54,177 nt of DNA, taken from positions 25,186,703 to 25,240,879 of the forward strand of contig NC_068999.1 of the NCBI RefSeq assembly GCF_001194135.2. Reading direction: 5' to 3'. The translations under genes were made by a program, and so were the position numbers. This DNA comes from Octopus bimaculoides. Lineage: Eukaryota. Positions 1 through 19,884 of the stretch are shown here, piece by piece (the first letter of the stretch is position 1; every line of letters begins with the position of its first letter). The notes beneath the pieces are model-generated. The model saw only the letters and a program-made list of their open reading frames with translations. It ran no database searches and was not told the DNA's origin.

Positions 1-6
1 AAAGAA

Positions 7-329
7 ATGGAAAAACTTTCAAAATACAAAGACCTGGAAATAGAGATAACTCGAATGTGGAATCTAAAAACAGAAACAATTCCTATCATAGTAGGTGCCT
101 TAGGTATAATAAAAAAATATTCAGACAAATACATAACAAAAACACCAGGACTTACAAATATATATAACATACAGAAAATTGCACTACTGGGTACTGCACA
201 CATTCTACGCAAAACACTTTCAATACAGTAAACATAAGAGCACCACAGCAAACCACAGCACATACCCAAGGCGCACAGAGCTGCGCTCGGTAGTGAAGTG
301 AAAGCACGTTATAAAAATAAAACTACTGA
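7..329 (+). mobile_element. 3' end of an RLE-type non-LTR retrotransposon (R4/Dong-like)
   Basis: ORF 7-231 (EKLSKYKDLEIEITRMW...PIIVGALG...QKIALLGTAHILRKTL) matches the C-terminal part of the restriction-like endonuclease of R2/R4-type elements. A short 3' UTR follows and runs into (TAA)n at about 330. Confidence 0.8.
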
Positions 330-345
330 ATAATAATAATAATAA

Positions 346-1678
346 CTAGAAAAGCACTCGCAGAGCGCAGACCTCCGCCAAGCATCTCATTTCCACCTCA
401 TATCCCACCGCTCTTGTCGCCATTATAACCACCGATACTATTTTATCCTCCTCCCATACTTATCTCGACCATCATCATCATCAACACTGTCTCTGCTTTC
501 ACCACAATCACCGTCAAAACTACGATCACTACAATCAGTTTCTTCACACAGTTGAAAGTCCATTATCCGATACTCATGGGACCGAGATTGTTGCAGATTA
601 TTGATTTTTCTAATTTCGGAGTTCTTTATTTTAAAAAAAAATTGCATCTACAAAACGGAAGTTTGAGGATAGAAACCAGGTCTAAACACAATAGCTTATA
701 GGCATACTCTGAATGTAGTTCTATAAAGATATTTAATACTTTTTTTATACTTAAAATCATCAGAAATGTTAAGATATCAGCCTCTATCCATGTTGTCATG
801 CTTTGATTAATAGGTTACAGCATAGATTATATTACTTAGATAAGTTTCGGCCGAAGATGACTCAGGCCATGTCTAATTTAATAGCACCACCTGGAAGAGA
901 TACACAGTCAGCTCTAGGGAACCGTAGCCCATTCATGCAGAGGGTTATTGGTTTCAGAAACATATCTGTGTGTGGGTGGTTTATCTGGTATTTGTTGGGG
1001 GTAATCATCTAAGAATCGTTTGAATGCCGTGAAGTCACTTTCCTCCTTTATGTGTGTCTGGCACGATGTTGAAGAGAGCAGGGTTAATTGAGGTGAAATA
1101 GTTCTGTATAGTACGACACAAACATTTCTGTCGTGGACGGATGGCACGGGGGCCAAGCCTGGGACAAATTTTAAAGATGGGCAATGTTGATGGAATATTT
1201 TCCACATCATACAGATGATATAAAGCTCACAGCGGCGGTGGAGGGAGCAAAGCCTGAGCTTTTTCAGTCGATCCCAATAGTCAAGACTTGTCATGTCATC
1301 CTCCGCAGACCTCCGCTAAGCAGTTCATTTTAAGATAGATACGCGAGTAAAATTACTAATAGTGAAACGAAAATAAACTTTGGAATCAGTAACGCCACCA
1401 TAGGTTACGTGGAAACGATGAACGTGTTTTCAAGGGAGATAATCAACGAATGTAACAATACTTCATGTAAAGTAGCTATAACAAATGAAAAGTCCTTCAA
1501 GAATCCATAAAAGTTCCCGGATCACAACCCAAAATTTCATCATCTGTTTCTTGTATCATTACCAACTTTTTCTGCAAGTTTTATCAAATATTGTTCACAA
1601 CTTTTTGAGTTATTTTGCACACAGACAGACAGACAAACCAATACCGATGAAAACATAACCTTCTTCCTTGGCGGAGGT
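346..1678. mobile_element. Helentron/DINE-like non-autonomous element (possibly two nested copies)
   Basis: Perfect 12-bp subterminal inverted repeat ACCTCCGCCAAG (371-382) / CTTGGCGGAGGT (1667-1678); (CAGA)n microsatellite at about 1620-1635; both ends embedded in (TAA)n. A second 5'-like motif GCAGACCTCCGCTAAGCA is at 1305-1322. Family assignment is inference. Confidence 0.55.
800..1294 (-). mobile_element. CR1/L2-like LINE 3' fragment
   Basis: ORF 914-1294(-) DYWDRLKKLRLCSLHRRCELYIICMMWKI resembles the Y.ERLK.L.L.SL.RRR motif C-terminal to CR1/L2-group RT; decayed. Confidence 0.62.
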
Positions 1679-1688
1679 AATAATAATA

Positions 1689-1732
<44 letters not shown>

Positions 1733-1748
1733 AATAATAATAATAATG

Positions 1749-1782
<34 letters not shown>

Positions 1783-2613
1783 NNNNNNNNNNNNNNNNNN
1801 NNNNNNNNNNNNNNNNNNNNNNNNNNNNNNNNNNNNNNNNNNNNNNNNNNNNNNNNNNNNNNNNNNNNNNNNNNNNNNNNNNNNNNNNNNNNNNNNNNNN
1901 NNNNNNNNNNNNNNNNNNNNNNNNNNNNNNNNNNNNNNNNNNNNNNNNNNNNNNNNNNNNNNNNNNNNNNNNNNNNNNNNNNNNNNNNNNNNNNNNNNNN
2001 NNNNNNNNNNNNNNNNNNNNNNNNNNNNNNNNNNNNNNNNNNNNNNNNNNNNNNNNNNNNNNNNNNNNNNNNNNNNNNNNNNNNNNNNNNNNNNNNNNNN
2101 NNNNNNNNNNNNNNNNNNNNNNNNNNNNNNNNNNNNNNNNNNNNNNNNNNNNNNNNNNNNNNNNNNNNNNNNNNNNNNNNNNNNNNNNNNNNNNNNNNNN
2201 NNNNNNNNNNNNNNNNNNNNNNNNNNNNNNNNNNNNNNNNNNNNNNNNNNNNNNNNNNNNNNNNNNNNNNNNNNNNNNNNNNNNNNNNNNNNNNNNNNNN
2301 NNNNNNNNNNNNNNNNNNNNNNNNNNNNNNNNNNNNNNNNNNNNNNNNNNNNNNNNNNNNNNNNNNNNNNNNNNNNNNNNNNNNNNNNNNNNNNNNNNNN
2401 NNNNNNNNNNNNNNNNNNNNNNNNNNNNNNNNNNNNNNNNNNNNNNNNNNNNNNNNNNNNNNNNNNNNNNNNNNNNNNNNNNNNNNNNNNNNNNNNNNNN
2501 NNNNNNNNNNNNNNNNNNNNNNNNNNNNNNNNNNNNNNNNNNNNNNNNNNNNNNNNNNNNNNNNNNNNNNNNNNNNNNNNNNNNNNNNNNNNNNNNNNNN
2601 NNNNNNNNNNNNN

Positions 2614-2645
<32 letters not shown>

Positions 2646-2720
2646 CTTTTCTACTATAGGTACAAAGCCTGGTATTTGAGGGAGAGGGCTAGTCGATTAC
2701 ATCAACCCCAGTACTTGAAG

Positions 2721-2775
<55 letters not shown>
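1679..2775. repeat. (TAA)n/(TGA)n microsatellite spanning assembly gap 1783-2613
   Basis: Trinucleotide runs directly visible on both sides of the N run. Confidence 0.95.
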
Positions 2776-2776
<1 letters not shown>

Positions 2777-3479
2777 TCTTTATTGACCACAAAAATGGTG
2801 CAAGAATACATTCACGACAATACAAAAGGAGTAGGATTTATATAAACAAGTGTGAACAATAAAAGCAATAACAAGAAAGTTTGAAAAAATATTCCGCAAT
2901 AGAGGAAGAATGACCCAGGGGCAACCAATGAACCCCACATGACCCATATCACTCTGGTCACTAAGACTACCATGGGAAGTGCTCATCGTTCCCGATACTT
3001 TTCAGCTTACAGGCAAATCCACTCACTTGGGACATACTCTCTACATTCATCGACCTATTTATAAATTTACTGGGAAGCAGCACATCACTCTCCACACTCA
3101 CTTTCCCTCGTAAGTGGAACTAGAAAAAGTCGATGACGCTTGACCGAAAAGGAAAATGTCTGTCTCCAATCTTTTCAATCGTGTCTACCACGCAACTTCT
3201 TTTGCCAGGGCCATCAGACAAAGGAAAACTGCTGGCCCTTTCTGGCCAAAGGAAGCTGGCAGGGAAACCTTTACAAAGGAGTCGGATTGATTTTAAGTTA
3301 AGGGTTAAGTTGATTTCACTGATCCCAGCACTTCGTTGGTGCTTTATTTTATCAATCTCGAAAGGATGAAAAGCAAAGTTGCCCTCTGTTGAAACTAAGA
3401 ATATAGAGAGTCGCAACTAAAAGCCGCAAAAATGATAGACACGAGGTCAGAAATTTAGGCGAAGTGGTTTGTCTATAAA

Positions 3480-4680
3480 ATAGACCACAGCGATCGTGGA
3501 GTACCAGAAAGGGATAAAATTAAAGGTACATAAATGAAGGAAGTCCTCAGTAAAGAATATCTCCTTAGAATTAAAATTTTTTTAATCCAAATTGATTTTT
3601 AAATCCAGGAAATAACATACTAACAATCAACTCGAGGGCAGCATCACTAATAAGTTATGCTCAATCATTGGATTGAGTAGAGAAAGGATAAATTTAAAAA
3701 TTACGACATTAAGACGAGAAAGCGACTCACACTGTACAGTAGCCTGAATCTCCAACCAGATGTGAGCCTTTATACCGGAAAGGAGAGATTTATGAATATT
3801 GAAGTGATTGTTCGTCTACAGTAATCAAACCGGAGACATTCTCTGAGGAGTAATCAAACCGGGGACATTCTCTGAGGAGGAAGTTATTCCTAAGTCCGTG
3901 TAAGAGATCTGTTTTTAACGGAGCTGGTAGAGTTCACAGAGAAAAATAAAACAGGAAATGTGAAAAATAAGTCAAATTTTGAAAGAAAAAATACCATTCT
4001 CTGCTTACAATAAAGAATGACAAAAACAATTGGGGGATTAATTTTAGCAGCACAGAAGCCGTCTGTAAGATTAAAATGGATCAAGAGAGTGATAAATAAG
4101 CGGAACCGTTCACCTTTATGTAGAATGTGTAACAAAACATTCAGTTATAGCTCAGTATGCTCAGAGTTCATTCAAAGTTTGTAAAATTGTGCAGAGAGGA
4201 TAAGACTGTTGCAATAATTCAGTGGAATTCTTTGCAAGATGTTCGGTTTTGTATATACAGAAAAGACCCAGTTTGTCGGCGCAGAAAAAAGCTCTTGAAA
4301 ACGATTAAATGAGTTTGCTTTGGAGTGCACCTTCACTAAGCCAAAGTAGATAACAGACCAACAAATTGGATATTATGAACGTCGATATGAAGAAAGTATC
4401 TTGTAATTGATTCAGCATACCCACTTGATAGCAGAGTTAAGTAAATAGAAAAAGGAAAAGTAATATATTACACAAACCTGAAGTAAAAATGTTCTCAAAT
4501 GCTAGAATATAAATGTTGATAAGGTCATGCGTCCACTAATTATCTATAAGAACATGGGAAACAGACGATAAATACCAGAGTCAAACTTGGGAAAGTTAGA
4601 ATTTAATAGGAGAGCAGGTGCAGAAAACTTATTTACTTGAAACAGCACGACGTGTCTTGAAAGTCCTCAATACAAAATAA
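3480..4680 (+). mobile_element. Decayed RLE-type (R4/Dong-like) LINE, 3' portion
   Basis: Broken frames give SPLCRMC (zinc knuckle, about 4100), ...LLW...NRP..DI....IDSAYPLDSRV (PD-(D/E)xK-like, about 4310-4440) and a terminal LLETARRVLKVL-like stretch; many stops and frameshifts. Confidence 0.7.
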
Positions 4681-4695
4681 GGATAGATAAGAACA

Positions 4696-5082
4696 TTGTT
4701 GTTGTTGGCACTCCGTCGCTTACGACGTTGAGGGTTCCAGTTGATCCGATCAACGGAACAGCCTGCTCGTGAAATTAACGTGCAAGTGGCTGAGCACTCC
4801 ACAGACACGTGTACCCTTAACGTAGTTCTCGGGGATATTCAGCGTGACATAGTGTGACAAGGCTGACCCTTTGAATTACAAGTACAATAGAAACAGGAAG
4901 AAAGAGTGAGAGAAAGTTGTGGTGAAAGAGTACGGCAGGGTTCGTCACCATCCCCTGCCGGAGCCTTGTGGAACTTTAGGTGTTTTTGCTCAATAAACAC
5001 TCACAACGCCCGGTCTGGGAATCGAAACCGCGATACTATGACCACGAGTCCGCTGCCCTAACCACTGGGCCATTGCGCCTCC
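4696..5082 (-). mobile_element. Full-length tRNA-derived SINE (family C)
   Basis: Minus-strand head GGAGGCGCAATGGCCCAGTGGTTAGG with A box and B box GGTTTCGATTCCC; (CAA)n tail; 12-bp TSD TAGATAAGAACA at 4684-4695 and 5083-5094. Confidence 0.88.
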
Positions 5083-5215
5083 TAGATAAGAACACAGAAG
5101 GGCCCTAATAGCAGAAAGAATAAAAATACTTCTTATGCAAGACCACTAGTTGTGGTCTGGTGCGCAGTGTTATTAAACCGGTTACAATGCCAACATCATG
5201 GGAAAACAGCAAATA

Positions 5216-6550
5216 CAGGGTGTCCCAAAAAGATGTACTCACTTTTTGACAGACGATTACTAATGTATTGTTTTTTTTATATTTCGGACGCAACTAACCC
5301 TTCACAATGGCAAATGCACAACTAACGTTTGAGGAAAAATAAATTATATTAAAGTGTTACTGGAAGCACGAAAATGTCACGGAAGTGCAAAGACAATTTA
5401 ACAGACAGTTTCAGAAGACACCACCAACACGACGCACTATTGCTCGCATCAGAGATAAATTTGAAGCATACGGAACTGTGCAGAACGTTAATAAGCAACG
5501 CTCTGGAAGACCACGAACATCCACCAGCCCCAATAGACACAACCAATTAATGGAAACCCTTTCCCGATCCCCAAAGAAATCCGTAAGACAATTGAGTCGT
5601 GAGATAGTAATCCCAAAATCGAGTGTTCATCGGATGTTGAAACGAGCTCATTGGAAAAGTTACGTTCCAACATTAAATCAAGCCCTCAATGAAGACGATC
5701 CTGATCGGAGAGTTCAATTTTGCGAATGGTGTCTGAACAAATTCGCAGAGGATGCAACGTTTCCAGAGAAAATCTTATGGAGCGATGAAGCCACCTTCAA
5801 GTTAAATGGTTCAGTCAACCGACATAATTGCACATATTGGGCCCGTGAAAATCCACATTTTACTATGGAACAGCATCTGAACCTACCAGGCGTTACAGTG
5901 TGGTGTGGAATGTCAACATTGGGTATCGTTGGACCATTTTTTTTTTACCAAACTGTCAGTGGCCCAGTTTACTTAAACTTATTGATGGAAAATGTTGGTC
6001 CACGAATTGAAGAAATGTTTGGGGACGAAGAGATTTACTTCCAGCAAGATGGAGCTCCTCCTCACTACCATCGTGATGTACGGGCTTACCTCGATGCAAC
6101 AAATCCAAACAAATGGATTGGGAGGAGAGGTAGCGTTGAATTTCCTGCACGTTCCCAGACCTCACGCCAATGGATTTTTTTTTTATGGGAAAGATAAGGT
6201 TTACGCTGCAAAACCAGTGACAGTTGATGATTTGAAAAATGAAATTCGAATACAATGTCTTGCAATTCCAAATGAAATGTTTGGCAATGTTGTCGAATCC
6301 ATTGTTGGACGTTATCAGCTTTGTTTAGAAAATGAAGGAAGGCAGTTTGAACATTTGCGAATACGCAGGAATGAGAGAGAACATTAAATAATTCTTAATG
6401 ACAATAAATAATCGTTTCTACAACAATTTATTTTCCTGAAATTAATTTAACTTTTTAGGATTGTATGTATATCAATAAATATCTACTTGAACACAAAATG
6501 CATGAGTACTGGGAAGTCAAAGAGTGGGTACATCTTTTTGGGACACCCTG
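5216..6550 (+). mobile_element. Tc1/mariner DD41D (rosa-type) transposon, full length, inactivated
   Basis: 35-bp TIRs CAGGGTGTCCCAAAAAGATGTAC(T/C)CACT(T/C)TTTGAC with 2 mismatches; TA on both sides. Transposase starts at ATG 5307 with a premature TAA at 5340 and carries WSDEATF and QQDGAPPH motifs. After repairing the frameshift near 6155, SPDLTPMD places 41 residues between the second and third Asp. Confidence 0.92.
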
Positions 6551-6559
6551 TATAATATT

Positions 6560-6760
6560 TTACAGGAGCACAAGGCAAGATGTATTATGGGGAGAGAATA
6601 GTGCTTGGCTGGTATTTATTCTATCGACTTCAGAAGGATGAAATGCAAAATTCACCTCGATGGGATTTAAACTCAGACCGTAAAGAGCCGGAACAAATAC
6701 CACCAAGCATTTTCTCTAACGATTTTAATGACAACCAAACCTATCTCCTAACAATAATAA
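6560..6760 (-). mobile_element. Degenerate SINE (family A)
   Basis: Diverged reverse-complement match to the GACTTTGCCTTTCATCC..TCGATAAA.TAAGTACCAG core seen in intact copies at 41152 and 42298. Confidence 0.55.
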
Positions 6761-7322
6761 TTTGAACAAGTGTGCGATGTCCTAAGTTTATTTCTCTCTT
6801 TCGTTCTTGAAGACAACACAAGTAGTATCTAACCCTCTCTCTTTTGAGATGTAAGAGATTTCACTCCATGTTTCGGTGAATCCCGCTTCTTGGGGAGACA
6901 TAAAGAAAGCTATTGTATCTTCATTTTTTTATTACATTGGTAGATTACCTTCTTTCTCTCTTATACTCGTGTAAACAACACCCATACTATGCAGTGTTTC
7001 TTTTATCTTCTTATTCCAACAAACTGTTAGTGCAAAAGACGAAACCAGTCCTTCAATCAAATTTCCATCATGAAGAAATAGATATTTTCAACCAATGGGG
7101 GCTCGTGTATAGGCACTGCGGAACTGCAGCACTCCCTATTCGATATTATCGATAACATTCAATATAATGAGTCCTTTTTTCTTTAATTCTTTCTTTATAC
7201 TTGTGCATTATATAATCCTTAAGCTTAATGTCAGTAGTCATCCCCTAGTTTATGAAAAAAGTACAAAAACCTTGTATAGAACTGTGCGCTCCACAGTTCC
7301 AGCAACGCGGTGTTTGGCTGTC

Positions 7323-7336
7323 GTGCGCATGCGCAC
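7323..7336. promoter_or_regulatory. Perfect NRF1-type palindrome GTGCGCATGCGCAC
   Basis: Exact TGCGCATGCGCA consensus in a locally CpG-richer patch (about 7100-7430). Function not shown. Confidence 0.3.
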
Positions 7337-7789
7337 ATGTCCGAGATAAGAAGCTTCATGTTAGGGAGAGGAAGCGTTATCGTTCATGCAGTGCCGGTGA
7401 AAGATAGTGTTTCTTTTTGACTCCGCGTGTGTTGTGCTTAAAAACGTGTTTATATTCTTGAATGTGATAAAGTGTAGAATTAGATTATTATCCTGTTTCC
7501 AGCTTCAATGTTGCTGCCAGGATTTGAAAAATGGGGCAGATTTTGTTATCTAGGGGGGATTTTTGAAAACCAAGGGGTAATCCGCGGCGATGTTCAGTGA
7601 ACAAATTAGACACACTACCCAGCAGTAGCTAAAATGCGAACTGATCAAGTTTATGTATAAATATTCTTTTTATATGTTTGTTTCCTCTTACACAATATTA
7701 AAACAACGGCTAAAAATTTTCTGAAGCAGCACCCCAAATAATTTTATCTACGAACCGCCACTGCTTTCAACTAACATTTTTGTGCCTGT

Positions 7790-8180
7790 GTGTGTGTGTG
7801 TNNNNNNNNNNNNNNNNNNNNNNNNNNNNNNNNNNNNNNNNNNNNNNNNNNNNNNNNNNNNNNNNNNNNNNNNNNNNNNNNNNNNNNNNNNNNNNNNNNN
7901 NNNNNNNNNNNNNNNNNNNNNNNNNNNNNNNNNNNNNNNNNNNNNNNNNNNNNNNNNNNNNNNNNNNNNNNNNNNNNNNNNNNNNNNNNNNNNNNNNNNN
8001 NNNNNNNNNNNNNNNNNNNNNNNNNNNNNNNNNNNNNNNNNNNNNNNNNNNNNNNNNNNNNNNNNNNNNNNNNNNNNNNNNNNNNNNNNNNNNNNNNNNN
8101 NNNNNNNNNNNNNNNNNNNNNNNNNNNNNNNNNNNNNNNNNNNNNNNNNNNNNNNNNNNNNNNNNNNNNNNNNNNNNNNN

Positions 8181-8248
<68 letters not shown>
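7790..8248. repeat. (GT)n/(CA)n microsatellite flanking gap 7802-8180
   Basis: Directly visible. Confidence 0.95.
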
Positions 8249-8251
<3 letters not shown>

Positions 8252-8759
8252 TTGCAGTATTTTCTTTTGCTTCTTCACAAGAACAATTGTATTTCTTCTT
8301 AATTTATTGTTTTAAATCATCTGAAAATAATTAAGCTTGGTTCGCCAACATATCTCGTAAGTCATTGATGAAATATAACAGAAATAGGCCAACAAAATCC
8401 CTTAGAGGTTATGTTGTTGGGGACAAGATTTCATACTGGAATAACGCCTAACAGTGAAAACTAGTTTTGAAGAAACAACAAGGAAAATTCTCTTGAGATT
8501 CTTCAAAGGGGTTCACGCCAAGATTGTATTTTATAAAATGAAAAGTCGTTTTAGCATTTTTTTTAGAATTCAGTGACTATCATTGTCAACATAAAAGAAA
8601 TATGCAAAGAGACACGCATGCATCAAGAATTGAATTTAGATAAAGTTATGCATACATACATGCAGACAAACAGACAAACAGATAGATATAATCACACATA
8701 CACACACACTCACACACATATATAATTGTATGCATGTATATATATATTTAAATACGTAC

Positions 8760-8945
8760 CAGATACCATTGATCAATAAAATATGGGTCTGTAAATATGG
8801 GTCGGCTCCAATTCATAGCTTGTGCTTGTAGGTGATGTGCATCGTAACCAGAGAAGTTACTCATGGAAGATAATTCTTGATCGGCAGATGTAGCTGATCC
8901 CTTTTTATGGCGAAGCAGTTGTTTAAGTTGTAAAATGTATTTCAC
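8760..8945 (-). CDS. Proprotein convertase (PC1/PC2/furin family) coding exon 3: end of prodomain, spacer, start of catalytic domain
   Basis: Acceptor tttaactag|GTG and donor CTG|gtacgt; 186 nt, phase 0-0. Encodes VKYILQLKQLLRHKKG...FTDPYFIDQWYL, matching the V.W..QQ...R.KR and F.DP.F..QWYL motifs at the conserved intron positions of the family. Confidence 0.9.
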
Positions 8946-9947
8946 CTAGTTAAACATGAAAATACTTTTATAAGTTTGAAATTAAATTATCAAATAAAAC
9001 CAATAAACTTAAGAGAAGCGGGTTGTAGGTGCAAAAATGAAAGGTCATATCTTCGAGTATTCAACCCAATAGAGCTCCTCACTTCACTCTAGTAGAAGTT
9101 TTGAGAGGATTTCGCCGAAGCACTACAAAATAACGAAAAGAAAAAACACTTGTTACTTAAACAGTGACCTCTTCCCCCACTGCTTAGTAGCAAGCAATAC
9201 AACTAGAAAAGAATTTTCCAATTATGCCGAGTCATTGAGAATGGGGTGTTTTAGCACTGCCGCAATATTGCAGAAATTGCAGAATGATAGAATTCTGTAG
9301 CAGTAACAGAAACTCATTTAAAGAACTGATAATTTGAAACCAATTCCAAGATTTTCACTATTTGCTTATGTCTAAAATTAAAGGCTGTTTACTGACTGGA
9401 TCCTCGATACCAATGTTTCCACCGGTTTTGACAGTTGGGGAACTTTTCTATGTCTGCACTTTATGCTTAGATTGCGATCGCAATACTCCATGAAACAATT
9501 GGATGAATTATTGACTCTGCTGGACTTCCTAAGCCGCAGTACTTAATTTGGAAAGCAGAGCGGAAGCAGTAAATATTTTGTGAAATACAAAAATTTACAA
9601 TCTATAAACTCATAAAGAATGAAGGGCAAAGTTGACCACAACAGAATTTGCAATGAGAATGTAAAGAGAGAAAAACATGTCACTTACAATTTCAGGTCCT
9701 AAAGTTAGGGGGAGCGAGCACATAAAAAAAGGAATTTCAGTAATAATGTCATTATGTATGAAACTTACAACTACTGATATAGGTATTACGTGAAAAAGAT
9801 GAAACTCAAGGTTTGTTTGGGTTGTTCAGATGCCGGCGGCCACCAACACATCACAGGAGATTGAGCAGACAGTTCAAAAACGCTGGAGCTTGGCCAAATA
9901 AAGTAATGATTCCAGAAAGTTCTTCCAAGGCCATGCGATTAACAAAA

Positions 9948-9951
<4 letters not shown>

Positions 9952-10014
<63 letters not shown>
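9952..10014. repeat. (GA)n microsatellite in convertase intron
   Basis: Directly visible. Confidence 0.95.
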
Positions 10015-10016
<2 letters not shown>

Positions 10017-11015
10017 CGACTTTTATCGCTCAAGTGAACTAAAGAATTAATAGGAACTGTTGAAAAAGCACCAATTTTGAAAAATGTGCCCGTGGAGACG
10101 GTCGCTCCCCCTATTAACAACGTTACTGACGCCGCTAAGCAATTTGTCCGACGTGATCACTATTGTGCTAGCTCACCGCCCAAGCATTTTAAATAATATA
10201 TGACACTCACTTATTATAATTATTTATTTTCCAAAAAAATTAAGTAAGACTTGTGATTTATAGTGGACACATCTACTAAACTAAACCATAAGAGGTGAGT
10301 AATAAAAGAGTGGGTTTCACTATTTGCAATGTTTTCAACATCGTAATTAACTACTGTGGGAATACATACAGTGAATAGAGAAAGTATTAGGACTTTGATG
10401 GAGCAAGCAAGAGAAATTACTTCGATATTTTCTGGTTAGTTGAGCTTCGTCTACAAAAGTATAACCAAGAATAGTAATGGCTATTCTTTGGATATACTTC
10501 ACTGTTTTCTCACAGCGGACAAAACAGCCTAGCTGAGTCTACATTCTGACTGGTCTCCATTATTTTTTCGGCCAAATATTATTAACTAACCCTTAACATT
10601 TTTTCCAAATCGCTGCTTTACTGTCGTTATTTGTGATGTTGAAAACATTAGAAATAATCAAACCCACCTTTTAATTACTTAAATATGGGTCAGCGTCCCT
10701 TTATAATTAAATTATATAATGTGTGTTGACACGTTATATGTTCAACAGAGCGTTTGAAAGCTGATAACAGGAACTGATTTTATTTATTTATTCGACTAGG
10801 GCTTTAGATACACTTTGTAACAGACTTAACTGGATGTTGTCTGATGATATTATTTACATATTCACACAGCACGAAATATTTCTGTGGGAGTACATTAACA
10901 AACGAAAGATGTAAACATTTTAAATGGGAACATTTTATTTAAACATTTGAGAGCTTGGTTACTTTAATTACCATAACAGACATAATAGACATTCAAACTA
11001 CGCCATTCAATTTAC

Positions 11016-11117
11016 CCTGTCATCTTGCTTAAGTCTCTCAAGGAATTTGTGAGCTTTCCTTTTCGACGAAACGGGAATATCTGGATGAACCAATCTATAA
11101 ACGTTCAAGTAATCGTG
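11016..11117 (-). CDS. Proprotein convertase coding exon 2 (mid prodomain); absent from ORF track
   Basis: Acceptor atttctatttcag|CAC and donor AGG|gtaaat; 102 nt, phase 0-0. Encodes HDYLNVYRLVHPDIPVSSKRKAHKFLERLKQDDR, comparable to PCSK1 [31 protein letters not shown]. In frame with both neighbouring exons. Confidence 0.88.
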
Positions 11118-12050
11118 CTGAAATAGAAATTAAATATAAGTGTTTTAAAATTTAGTCAACGATAATTTGGTTAGAATAAATATCGTGGTAAATATGTGAA
11201 ATCATTACTATTCAACATACAAACTATATAATTACATATTGATTTTTTAAAGTTAGTATGACTACTTCACGTATTACATTATATAACACAATTTTTGTCC
11301 TTGGGTAACAACTGTTATTTCCTATTTGCTTACCCCCAGAAAGTATGAAAAACGGCTAATATTTCCTTCAAACTTTGCCTTTGTTGCATTTATTCAAACC
11401 CCAAAGAATCCCTCTCAACACATGGCCGTGATGCTCTCCCACTATTCTTGCTTATGATCAGAGACAAGTAAATCTATACCACAGTATAGAGCAGAATATT
11501 TGCTATAATGATATTTCTACTTCAGCAACTCAGCGTTGAATCTGTCTGAAATGTGATGGAAAACAGGTCTGTTTCAAACATTGATATCCAGATCACAAAA
11601 GTAAATTTTGAAGGAAATAATAATCATTTCGTTTGAGTTCTAGATAGGAGCAAATAGAAAATAACGCTTACTGACCAAAACAACAAAAACATTATTACAC
11701 AGTGTAATAAACTGAGAAAATAAGTTATCGCATAAGCAAGACAACAAAAGAACTTCTGTTTAGTTGTTTCATTTGCGCGAATTAACAACCAAATTTCAAT
11801 CAATTGACAACCTACAATCTTATTCTAAAAACGAAAGGACTCGTTGAGCAATATAGGCCAAGGTGTGCAATTCTTTTAAGATCACAGTTGTCTTGAGGAT
11901 AAACAACAACAATGTAAAATGTTTTAGCAGAACTAAAGATATATTTCAAGTTTTGAAATTAGATATACAACATTCTGTGACTCAAGATAACGATGATGGT
12001 TCAAGAAATGTAAAATATAATTAAATCAAAATTCTTCAGAAAATATTGAC

Positions 12051-12239
12051 CTTTGAGCCCAGATGGAAGCCATATTGTTTTGCCAAATCAGTTACGTTTT
12101 GTTTTGTTGAAATCAGTTCGAGAGCAAAGCTGTTGCTGTAGATAAATGAAGCCGGGTCACCATCTTGCGAAAATGAAAGATGAAGGTTGATGCTTATCAA
12201 TAGACATGTTAACAAACTCAGAAACCAGTCAGCAGCCAT
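12051..12239 (-). CDS. Proprotein convertase coding exon 1: signal peptide and start of S8 prodomain
   Basis: MAADWFLSLLTCLLISINLHLSFS is a hydrophobic leader; YSNSFALEL...DLAKQYGFHLGSK matches the furin/PC Y.N.WAV.....A...GF..LG motif. Donor AAG|gtcaat. An upstream acceptor ttttttctcgatag| at 12259 leaves 19 nt of 5' UTR and implies a further non-coding exon at higher coordinates. Confidence 0.88.
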
Positions 12240-12488
12240 TTTATCACTTATGCTGGACCTATCGAGAAAAAAATAACATATATACAGAAACAGTCACGAA
12301 AATTTGGGCTTCCCCACTCCCCCACAAAAAAACAATCATATCTAAAAATGATATACTCTTTTTGTTTTTGTTTATTAAATAAAAAAAAGGTTTCTGAAGA
12401 CTGTAAATTATGTAGATATTCATATGGAGGCAGTCTGACAGCAAAAACATATTAATTATTTAGACATTCCAATATTTTCTGGGTTTTG

Positions 12489-18073: not shown

Positions 18074-19884
18074 NNNNNNNNNNNNNNNNNNNNNNNNNNN
18101 NNNNNNNNNNNNNNNNNNNNNNNNNNNNNNNNNNNNNNNNNNNNNNNNNNNNNNNNNNNNNNNNNNNNNNNNNNNNNNNNNNNNNNNNNNNNNNNACACA
18201 TACACACACAAATAACATCTGACGGTAATCAACAGAATTAGCTGTAGTTGCACTATCCTTTTCTTTTTTTTTTTTTTGCATACATAGGTCATGTGAAAAA
18301 TTTCAGTGTAAAGGAAGGAAAAACACTTTTTCTAAATAGCGTAGGTAGGCAAATACCAAGTTACCAAAAAAAAAAAAAAAACAAGTACGATCAGTAATGG
18401 CTAACGATTTGATGGTATAGTATAATTTATAGTGAAAAAATATCAGCTGCTATAAGGCAAAGAATTTTATCGAATATCTCAAAGTTCTAGGAGGAAGTGT
18501 TGATAAAGAAAACCCTCCCACGGTAAGGCCTCTGGAATGTAGTTAAATTTATCAACGTCAGAATGTTAAGTTGCATAAACGGGGTTGGGGAAGAAAAACT
18601 AACGATATTGATGTCAGTAAAATTAATTGGAGTGGGGCAGTGTTAGATTCCTAGCAAGTATATCTCAAGAAATAGTATATTCTTACATTCAATCTCTGCT
18701 AAATGGTACTGTCAGTTACAATATATCTCGTTATATCTTAACATCACAATATTTTTTTTCAGTAGTATTATTTATCTTCAGGTGATGCAACTAAGAATGT
18801 ATATGGAATATATAAACTGGTTCATATAAGCTAGATATCATTTATCAGGTTGTTCAGGGTACATATGCTAGACATCATTTTCCCAGATTCAGCTGGCATT
18901 CTTTCTTGTTCTCGGTCAAGGCACTAGTTTCACTTTTTAACTGACAGCGGTTGAGAGTCGGATTTCATGTTTCAAGTATCGGGTATTTTAGGTCTAGTTT
19001 GTTAGCTTTTCGCAAGTTTTTTTTTTCTTTTTTCCTCAGTAAGAAACTCTTTGATGCTAATCACAAATTTCGCTTCCAAATTAATTTCTACAAAATATTT
19101 TTTATTTGGGGTATCAGGGGAAAAGAATTTTCTACCACTACAAAAATTTTTGCTTTTGTTGTTCACATAAAAATATAAATTATTAATTGCCTTCGATTTG
19201 AGTAAAGTAATACTGTATTGGAGTACCATCAAACAAATTCATTTTAGGACACAAATATGCTGTTATATAGTTTGTTATATAATATGTAGCTATGTAGTTT
19301 TCATTTTTTTAAATTGGTACCGTAATCATTTAATTGATACCGTGATCTGAGTTTATAACTTGTCTTCAATTTCTACTTGGAGCTTCTTTTAGGCTATTCA
19401 TCTTAGAAAAATGGTAAAAGTCCACATTCTCAATTCCACTTACGACTTACAGAGTTCATTCTTCTGCTAATGCATGTTATATATAATAGTAGTCATACAA
19501 CTAAGGGTGTATGGTTTCCAAATTTTCCCTTTCATTTCTTCTCGGTTAAAATATGATATTTTAAGTGAATTTCATACATATATAAAATCAAGAGTAAGTT
19601 TATGGCGTATTTTTTTCCTTTTTTATTGTCCGTGGGAAAGAAGCATAATCAGCAGAGAATAAGAGAACAATCGCTCGCGAGTTCAAATGTGAAAGAATGG
19701 AATATTTTTTCTGGGCTATCAAGCCAATTAATATAAGATGAGAGAATCAAAACTGTTGTGGCACCAGAATTGAGAACCTTTGCTGTGGATTGTCATGCAG
19801 CAATAACACTTGCTTTAACATGAGAATTGCTGGTTTCCGTTTGTTGGCCAGCATTTTACTGTAGTCTACAGTGGTGATTGGAGA

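Follow-up and report, generated by a model that had tools for sequence, protein, structure and literature searches.

How does a convertase of the kexin/furin type mature if the genome encodes lysine at the residue after which its prodomain should be cut? The question is raised by a site in Octopus bimaculoides, on the minus strand of the window, as we call the whole stretch of 54,177 nucleotides that was analyzed. The original prediction read this activation site as R-H-K-K, and proposed that a single A-to-I edit of the adenosine at 8902 would make it R-H-K-R and could act as an RNA-level switch for enzyme maturation. The site is made up as follows, an arrow marking a scissile bond.

8912-8910 (CGC), 8909-8907 (CAT), 8906-8904 (AAA), 8903-8901 (AAG) and 8900-8898 (GGA), minus strand: codons of the site
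8901..8912, minus strand: primary prodomain cleavage motif, with P4-P1 as R109-H110-K111-K112 and the scissile bond before G113
8902, minus strand: adenosine proposed for editing, the middle base of AAG (P1), preceded by A and followed by G on the transcript strand

A direct reading of the minus strand reproduced both the codons and the coordinate exactly: 8912-8898 is CGC CAT AAA AAG GGA, which translates as R-H-K-K↓G, and the wider reading is ...CAA CTG CTT CGC CAT AAA AAG GGA TCA GCT.... Set against the autocleavage motif R-X-K/R-R, the site has Arg at P4 and Lys at P2, with Lys at P1. A-to-I conversion at 8902 would turn the P1 codon into AGG, which is Arg.

The identity of the site as the primary activation point of a kexin/furin-family zymogen was confirmed, as the motif ends an S8 pro-domain scoring above the Pfam cut-off (PF16470, 30.5 bits against 25.5, E = 5.9e-7). 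Residues 38-111 match profile positions 2-78 of 79, which places K112, the P1 residue, at the final position of the profile. The best matches among solved structures are those of the PC1/3 prodomain (1kn6, 9fid/9fic). The 15 residues VKYILQLKQLLRHKK align without a gap to ...VIWAEQQYEKERSKR of PC1/3, and likewise to the corresponding stretch of furin, VQWLEQQVAKRRTKR. By its prodomain, the position of its motif and its nearest relatives, the gene is a PC1/3-like ('PC3-like endoprotease') kexin-like convertase.

The site belongs to the last of three 5' coding exons, whose features are listed here with a slash at each exon border.

12051..12239, minus strand: coding exon 1, 63 codons, with the ATG, the signal peptide MAADWFLSLLTCLLISINLHLSFS and the prodomain start IYSNSFALELISTKQNVTDLAKQYGFHLGSK; donor AAG/gtcaat
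11016..11117, minus strand: coding exon 2, 34 codons, phase 0, HDYLNVYRLVHPDIPVSSKRKAHKFLERLKQDDR; acceptor cag/, donor /gtaaat
11087-11085, minus strand: His74 in exon 2, aligned with the pH-sensor His72 of PC1/3
11072-11058, minus strand: secondary cleavage site V-S-S-K-R↓K (KR83) in exon 2
8760..8945, minus strand: coding exon 3, 62 codons, phase 0, reading VKYILQLKQLLRHKK↓GSATS, a 37-residue spacer and DPYFIDQWYL
8760..8789, minus strand: DPYFIDQWYL, the conserved start of the catalytic (S8) domain, identical in Argonauta

Exon 1 was found by a motif scan and reads from the ATG through the signal peptide and IYSNSFALELIS to ...GFHLGSK/gtcaat. Exon 2 was found by tblastn with convertase N-termini that served as probes only. 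Exon 3 begins at 8945 after the acceptor ttaactag/GTG and ends at 8760 with a strong donor, CTG/gtacgt. All three exons are in phase 0, and their joined product is 159 residues long. Its signal peptide, read directly from the sequence, covers approximately residues 1-24, with a hydrophobic core and small residues at -3 and -1. The roles of the pH-sensor His72 and of the secondary cleavage site in PC1/3 have been described (PMC12405487). Directly before the ATG exon, the minus strand at 12240-12262 (ttttttctcgatag/GTCCAGCATAAGTGATAAA) resembles a splice acceptor, and there may be a non-coding first exon upstream.

The 159-residue product is 100% identical to UniRef100_A0A0L8GVG1 of Octopus bimaculoides, a 162-residue entry named 'Peptidase S8 pro-domain domain-containing protein' that consists of exons 1-3 plus a three-codon read-through of the exon-3 donor (VRI, then a stop). 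The public gene model stops early, at exon 3. The gene is thus already in UniProt as an unnamed prodomain fragment, and what is new is the P1-Lys site. Exon 3 by itself gave zero matches in a word-index protein search with a sparse index, and a two-sequence alignment used as the query retrieved the identical octopus protein.

Downstream of exon 3, tblastn with human furin and with a complete molluscan relative as queries, together with a listing of all stop-free segments, found no catalytic exon in 1-8759, two assembly gaps included, and of the octopus catalytic domain the window holds the first 10 residues only. Two of the seven assembly gaps (N runs) in the window lie inside intron 3, where small features are possible, and (GT)n/(CA)n, (TA)n, homopolymer runs or other short simple repeats border several of the seven.

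1783-2613: N run
7802-8180: N run
18074-18195: N run
42596-43071: N run
44237-44321: N run
45580-45772: N run
51333-51723: N run

How unusual is lysine at P1? Among 117 aligned sequences, P1 is Arg in 114 and Lys in one, the octopus protein alone; the two other rows without Arg are a one-column misalignment (KKRRR↓D) and an aberrant metagenomic sequence. P4 is Arg in 114 of the 117, and P2 is Lys in 105 and Arg in nine. The claim that a P1 lysine is exceptional thus held, at 1 of 117 homologues, and the observation goes beyond chance. An exhaustive HMMER scan of 1.84 billion cluster representatives returned seven matches, by far the best being the 'PC3-like endoprotease variant B' of Argonauta hians (E = 1e-37, 55% identity). 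The remaining matches have R-x-K-R throughout, as do the named gastropod and bivalve proteins that were compared (Physella, Patella, Biomphalaria, Ostrea, Haliotis, Mizuhopecten, Pecten and Ylistrum).

The spacer between the cleavage site and DP.F..QWYL was also compared. It is 37 residues long in octopus and 27-43 in most molluscan and invertebrate relatives retrieved, with shorter forms of 18-19 residues in three scallop proteins and Capitella and of 12 in a vertebrate PC1/3. The idea that a long spacer is an oddity of the octopus protein was dropped, as it is common to most molluscan and other invertebrate relatives retrieved. Toward the end of the spacer, R145 (8804-8802, minus strand) lies 4-5 residues before TDPYF and is kept in Argonauta (QKNR↓N), and an Arg near this position recurs in other molluscan relatives. 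A second N-terminal trimming of the long spacer may take place at R145.

The Argonauta hians orthologue, protein P0001 at locus L001, is 55% identical over 159 residues, and the locus has the same three exons in the same phases, with introns of similar size.

L001 10001-10216: Argonauta counterpart of exon 1, by orthology to octopus exon 1
L001 13618-13800: Argonauta counterpart of exon 3, the same exon as octopus exon 3

At the activation site, Argonauta reads CGG ACA CGA AGA GGC, or R-T-R-R↓G, with AGA as the P1 codon. Since Arg is found in Argonauta and in all other molluscs retrieved, the octopus lysine is derived; a lysine conserved in non-editing molluscs, which would have told against the original prediction, was not encountered. 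The fourth Argonauta exon lies 18.5 kb downstream of exon 3, so the octopus window would end before the catalytic domain. Further on, the Argonauta locus carries the Asp (DDGID), His (SHGTH) and Ser (GTSAAAPLAAG) motifs, followed by a P domain. Its annotation splits this one convertase gene into two models (L001 10001-67422 and 69120-77422), of which the first (P0001, 438 residues) ends in translated intron and the second holds the catalytic Ser exon (L001 69284-69463) and the P domain. The Argonauta catalytic His motif is HGTHCAG, against HGTRCAG in the family consensus.

Between octopus and Argonauta, the Nei-Gojobori dN/dS is 0.24 over 154 aligned codons, with dS saturated at ~1.5; under the same saturation it is 0.12 over the 80 codons of the prodomain core and 0.41 in the spacer. 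DPYFIDQWYL differs by five synonymous changes and no nonsynonymous change, and exon 3 outside its two motifs is poorly conserved. These ratios indicate that purifying selection has acted on the gene over most of the interval since octopus and Argonauta diverged. On the evidence of its exons and this constraint, the convertase gene is real, spliced and constrained, and the window holds its 5' part, from the signal peptide through prodomain and spacer to the catalytic start.

What, then, would allow such a zymogen to mature? The explanation that we favor, with confidence somewhat better than even, is that the octopus protein is a genomic P1-Lys variant of an otherwise ordinary PC1/3-like zymogen that cleaves itself in cis after K112. 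In the octopus lineage, the genomic P1 Arg would have become Lys (AGR to AAG), giving R-H-K-K↓G. The zymogen would still release its prodomain by cutting itself intramolecularly as usual, with Lys112 now preceding the bond and the reaction probably slowed. The cis reaction would tolerate a poorer P1, lysine being the most conservative stand-in for arginine, and RNA editing would be unnecessary for maturation.

Several findings count in favor of this cis cleavage: canonical splice sites in three phase-0 exons; the retention of the P4 Arg, the P2 Lys, His74 and KR83; the family assignment, the Argonauta orthology and the dN/dS constraint; and the double-stranded RNA that was not found around 8902, together with editing levels that are typically a few percent. 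Counted against it is the P1 Arg of 114 of 117 relatives. Human PC1/3, when assayed on a peptide library, showed no cleavage other than after KR and RR (PMC9070308), and lysine at P1 should therefore cost activity, despite the constraint on the gene. We infer that the intramolecular reaction tolerates lysine.

An unlikely alternative, which is the idea of the original prediction, is that ADAR edits A8902 in a useful fraction of transcripts, so that AAG is read as AGG and the ancestral R-H-K-R is restored. Octopus bimaculoides is a coleoid, and the lysine is derived, with Arg in Argonauta and every other mollusc retrieved. ADAR disfavors G on the 5' side of its target and favors G on the 3' side; the neighbors of 8902 (A-A-G) are permissive in that the disfavored 5' G is avoided, a weak criterion that a large share of adenosines would satisfy. 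With lysine derived and Arg in the relatives, 8902 fits the definition that PMC6881472 gives of a potential restorative editing site, one at which an A-to-G change recreates the ancestral residue. Compared with synonymous sites, restorative sites in coleoids are more frequently edited and reach higher editing levels (PMC6881472, PMC8382921), and the harm-permitting model predicts just such a loss of a conserved Arg from a gene under constraint. Low levels of restorative editing nevertheless argue against a useful edited fraction: the median for coleoid restorative sites is < 2.5%, and in squid only 13% of restorative sites exceed 20% editing (PMC6881472).

The predicted RNA structure also argues against editing. 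The duplex that was to be sought by folding the exon with its flanking introns did not appear, and a duplex scan did no better than shuffled sequence. An inverted-repeat search detected no inverted repeat over 8892-8915 within 8181-11000, and a local fold of 301 nt gave z = -0.1. When the 61 nt around 8902 were paired with any 120-nt stretch of the 12.4 kb pre-mRNA, the best duplex reached -36.3 kcal/mol, against -37.1 +/- 3.0 kcal/mol for shuffled targets. The adenosine is predicted to be unpaired both when the spliced CDS is folded (pairing probability 0.11; whole-CDS z = +1.4) and when exon 3 +/- 400 nt is folded. By these predictions, which cover the gap-free sequence of the pre-mRNA inside the window, there is no double-stranded RNA at 8902. 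A complementary partner in the 12.4 kb pre-mRNA and an inverted repeat thus both appear to be absent, and the folds leave 8902 unpaired. In addition, the poor conservation of exon 3 outside its motifs is unlike the surroundings of strongly conserved editing sites. A weak further argument is that convertase, S8 or endoprotease names were not found among the listed rows of Table S5 of PMC9989829, the high-confidence O. bimaculoides recoding table, most of whose rows there read 'hypothetical protein'.

Conserved elements do occur in the introns. As editing-complementary sequence for exon 3 they were tried and rejected, with duplex z = -0.36 and +0.70 against shuffles. In intron 2, an 84-bp element at 10706-10789 (minus strand), corresponding to L001 12005-12079, is 82% identical between octopus and Argonauta despite saturated synonymous sites. 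In octopus, this element pairs with exon 2 over ~41 bp in six short helices (-30.3 kcal/mol, z = -3.5 against shuffles), and the equivalent duplex in Argonauta is unexceptional at z = -0.7; the element may act in splicing or supply sequence complementary to exon 2. Conservation with Argonauta also extends ~170 bp past the exon-2 donor (10848-11015, minus strand; 74% over 303 bp including the exon) and 44 bp past the exon-1 donor (12007-12050, minus strand).

The window also contains mobile sequence. Within intron 3, on the strand opposite to the gene, a 270-residue open reading frame at 5385-6197 (plus strand) with Tc1/mariner-type helix-turn-helix transposase domains is a transposon remnant, for which only DUF4817 scores above the cut-off and HTH_32 and HTH_Tnp_Tc3_2 fall below it. 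A Mos1-type mariner transposase at 35224-36245 (plus strand) is split over two overlapping frames (HTH_48, E = 4e-14; Transposase_1, E = 9e-31); this frameshifted copy lies ~23 kb upstream of the convertase start. A 126-residue frame at 914-1294 (minus strand; ...YWDRLKKLRLCSLHRRCELYIICMMWKIF...) has zero Pfam matches and resembles the C-terminal tail of a non-LTR retrotransposon reverse transcriptase. Window positions 893-834 match L001 76044-75985 at 88%, and related repeats therefore occur in Argonauta.

Similarly unlikely, in our view, is that the gene is losing or changing its function in Octopus, the catalytic part having decayed or the product acting solely as a prodomain-like protein, so that P1 is no longer constrained. 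The one O. bimaculoides protein retrieved is the 162-residue fragment, which covers the prodomain and continues past the exon-3 donor, no octopus orthologue of the catalytic domain appears among the top matches listed for the Argonauta protein, and the 8.7 kb downstream of exon 3 hold no catalytic exon. However, this last absence is expected from the Argonauta locus, whose next exon is 18.5 kb downstream. The three exons, their splice sites, the start codon and the signal peptide are moreover all intact, the dN/dS of the prodomain core is 0.12, and the first motif of the catalytic domain has changed only synonymously. An old pseudogene was rejected on dN/dS, and a recent loss may have taken place in Octopus.

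Slightly less likely, the K112 bond may be bypassed, either by a cut in trans by another convertase or a different protease or by use of V-S-S-K-R83 or Arg145. The secondary site has a canonical K-R pair in both octopods, and Arg145, 4 residues before TDPYF, is common to octopus and Argonauta and has similar Arg residues in other molluscs. In the convertases that have been studied, by contrast, the first cut is intramolecular, falls at the C-terminal motif and is required for exit from the ER. Arg145 is furthermore followed in octopus by Pro, which is unfavorable as P1'.

We regard it as improbable, more so than a bypass, that the lysine is not fixed, and that it stems from a mistake in assembly or base calling or represents one of two alleles, A and G, in the sequenced animal. 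The window comes from a draft scaffold interrupted by seven N gaps, 8902 falls within a run of five A's, and a single octopus sequence stands behind the P1 Lys. However, P2 differs from Argonauta as well (AAA against CGA), the whole exon is consistently diverged, and one-base substitution errors are uncommon in deep short-read assemblies. Least probable by our estimate is the strong form of the original prediction, a regulatory switch in which editing of A8902, dependent on tissue or state, gates zymogen maturation in neurons, the canonical R-H-K-R site being encoded by edited transcripts alone.

We therefore return to cis cleavage after Lys112 and place the octopus protein among known systems. 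With PC1/3 (PCSK1, neuroendocrine convertase 1) and the invertebrate 'PC3-like endoprotease' it has in common the signal peptide and the S8 pro-domain, a His aligned with His72, a basic secondary site, and a multibasic motif at the end of the prodomain followed by DP.F..QWYL; its nearest proteins are molluscan PC1/PC3-like enzymes. In contrast to PC1/3, its P1 is a Lys, unique among 117 sequences, its secondary site is K-R only, without a P4 Arg, and its spacer is approximately three times longer than that of vertebrate PC1/3 (37 against 12 residues). In this comparison, the octopus protein is represented by its prodomain and first catalytic residues alone. The Argonauta orthologue has an identical FTDPYFIDQWYL and the same G-S after the cut; it differs in reading R-T-R-R (CGG ACA CGA AGA) where octopus reads R-H-K-K (CGC CAT AAA AAG).

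Some subtilase zymogens, SKI-1/S1P and PCSK9, have a prodomain that is cut after a residue other than Arg. These fall in the pyrolysin-like and proteinase-K-like branches, whose pockets differ, whereas the octopus protein is kexin-like by its prodomain and its QWYL motif. Restorative, 'harm-permitting' recoding (Jiang and Zhang 2019, PMC6881472; Shoshan et al. 2021, PMC8382921) resembles the octopus case in its coleoid host, in affecting a conserved residue, in the genomic A where the ancestral state needs a G, and in the K-to-R class of the change. In contrast to that system, octopus 8902 has no predicted double-stranded structure and is a 'potential site' only.

Arginine at P1 of the self-activation site is among the most constant features of kexin/furin-type convertases. 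If rescue at the RNA level were true, the gene would be a clear case of editing that controls a protease which itself controls many neuropeptides, and if the switch were true, ADAR activity would be a gate on the maturation of a neuropeptide-processing protease. If instead the intramolecular cleavage of the prodomain tolerates lysine, the octopus site would bear on how convertase zymogens and their inhibitors are understood.
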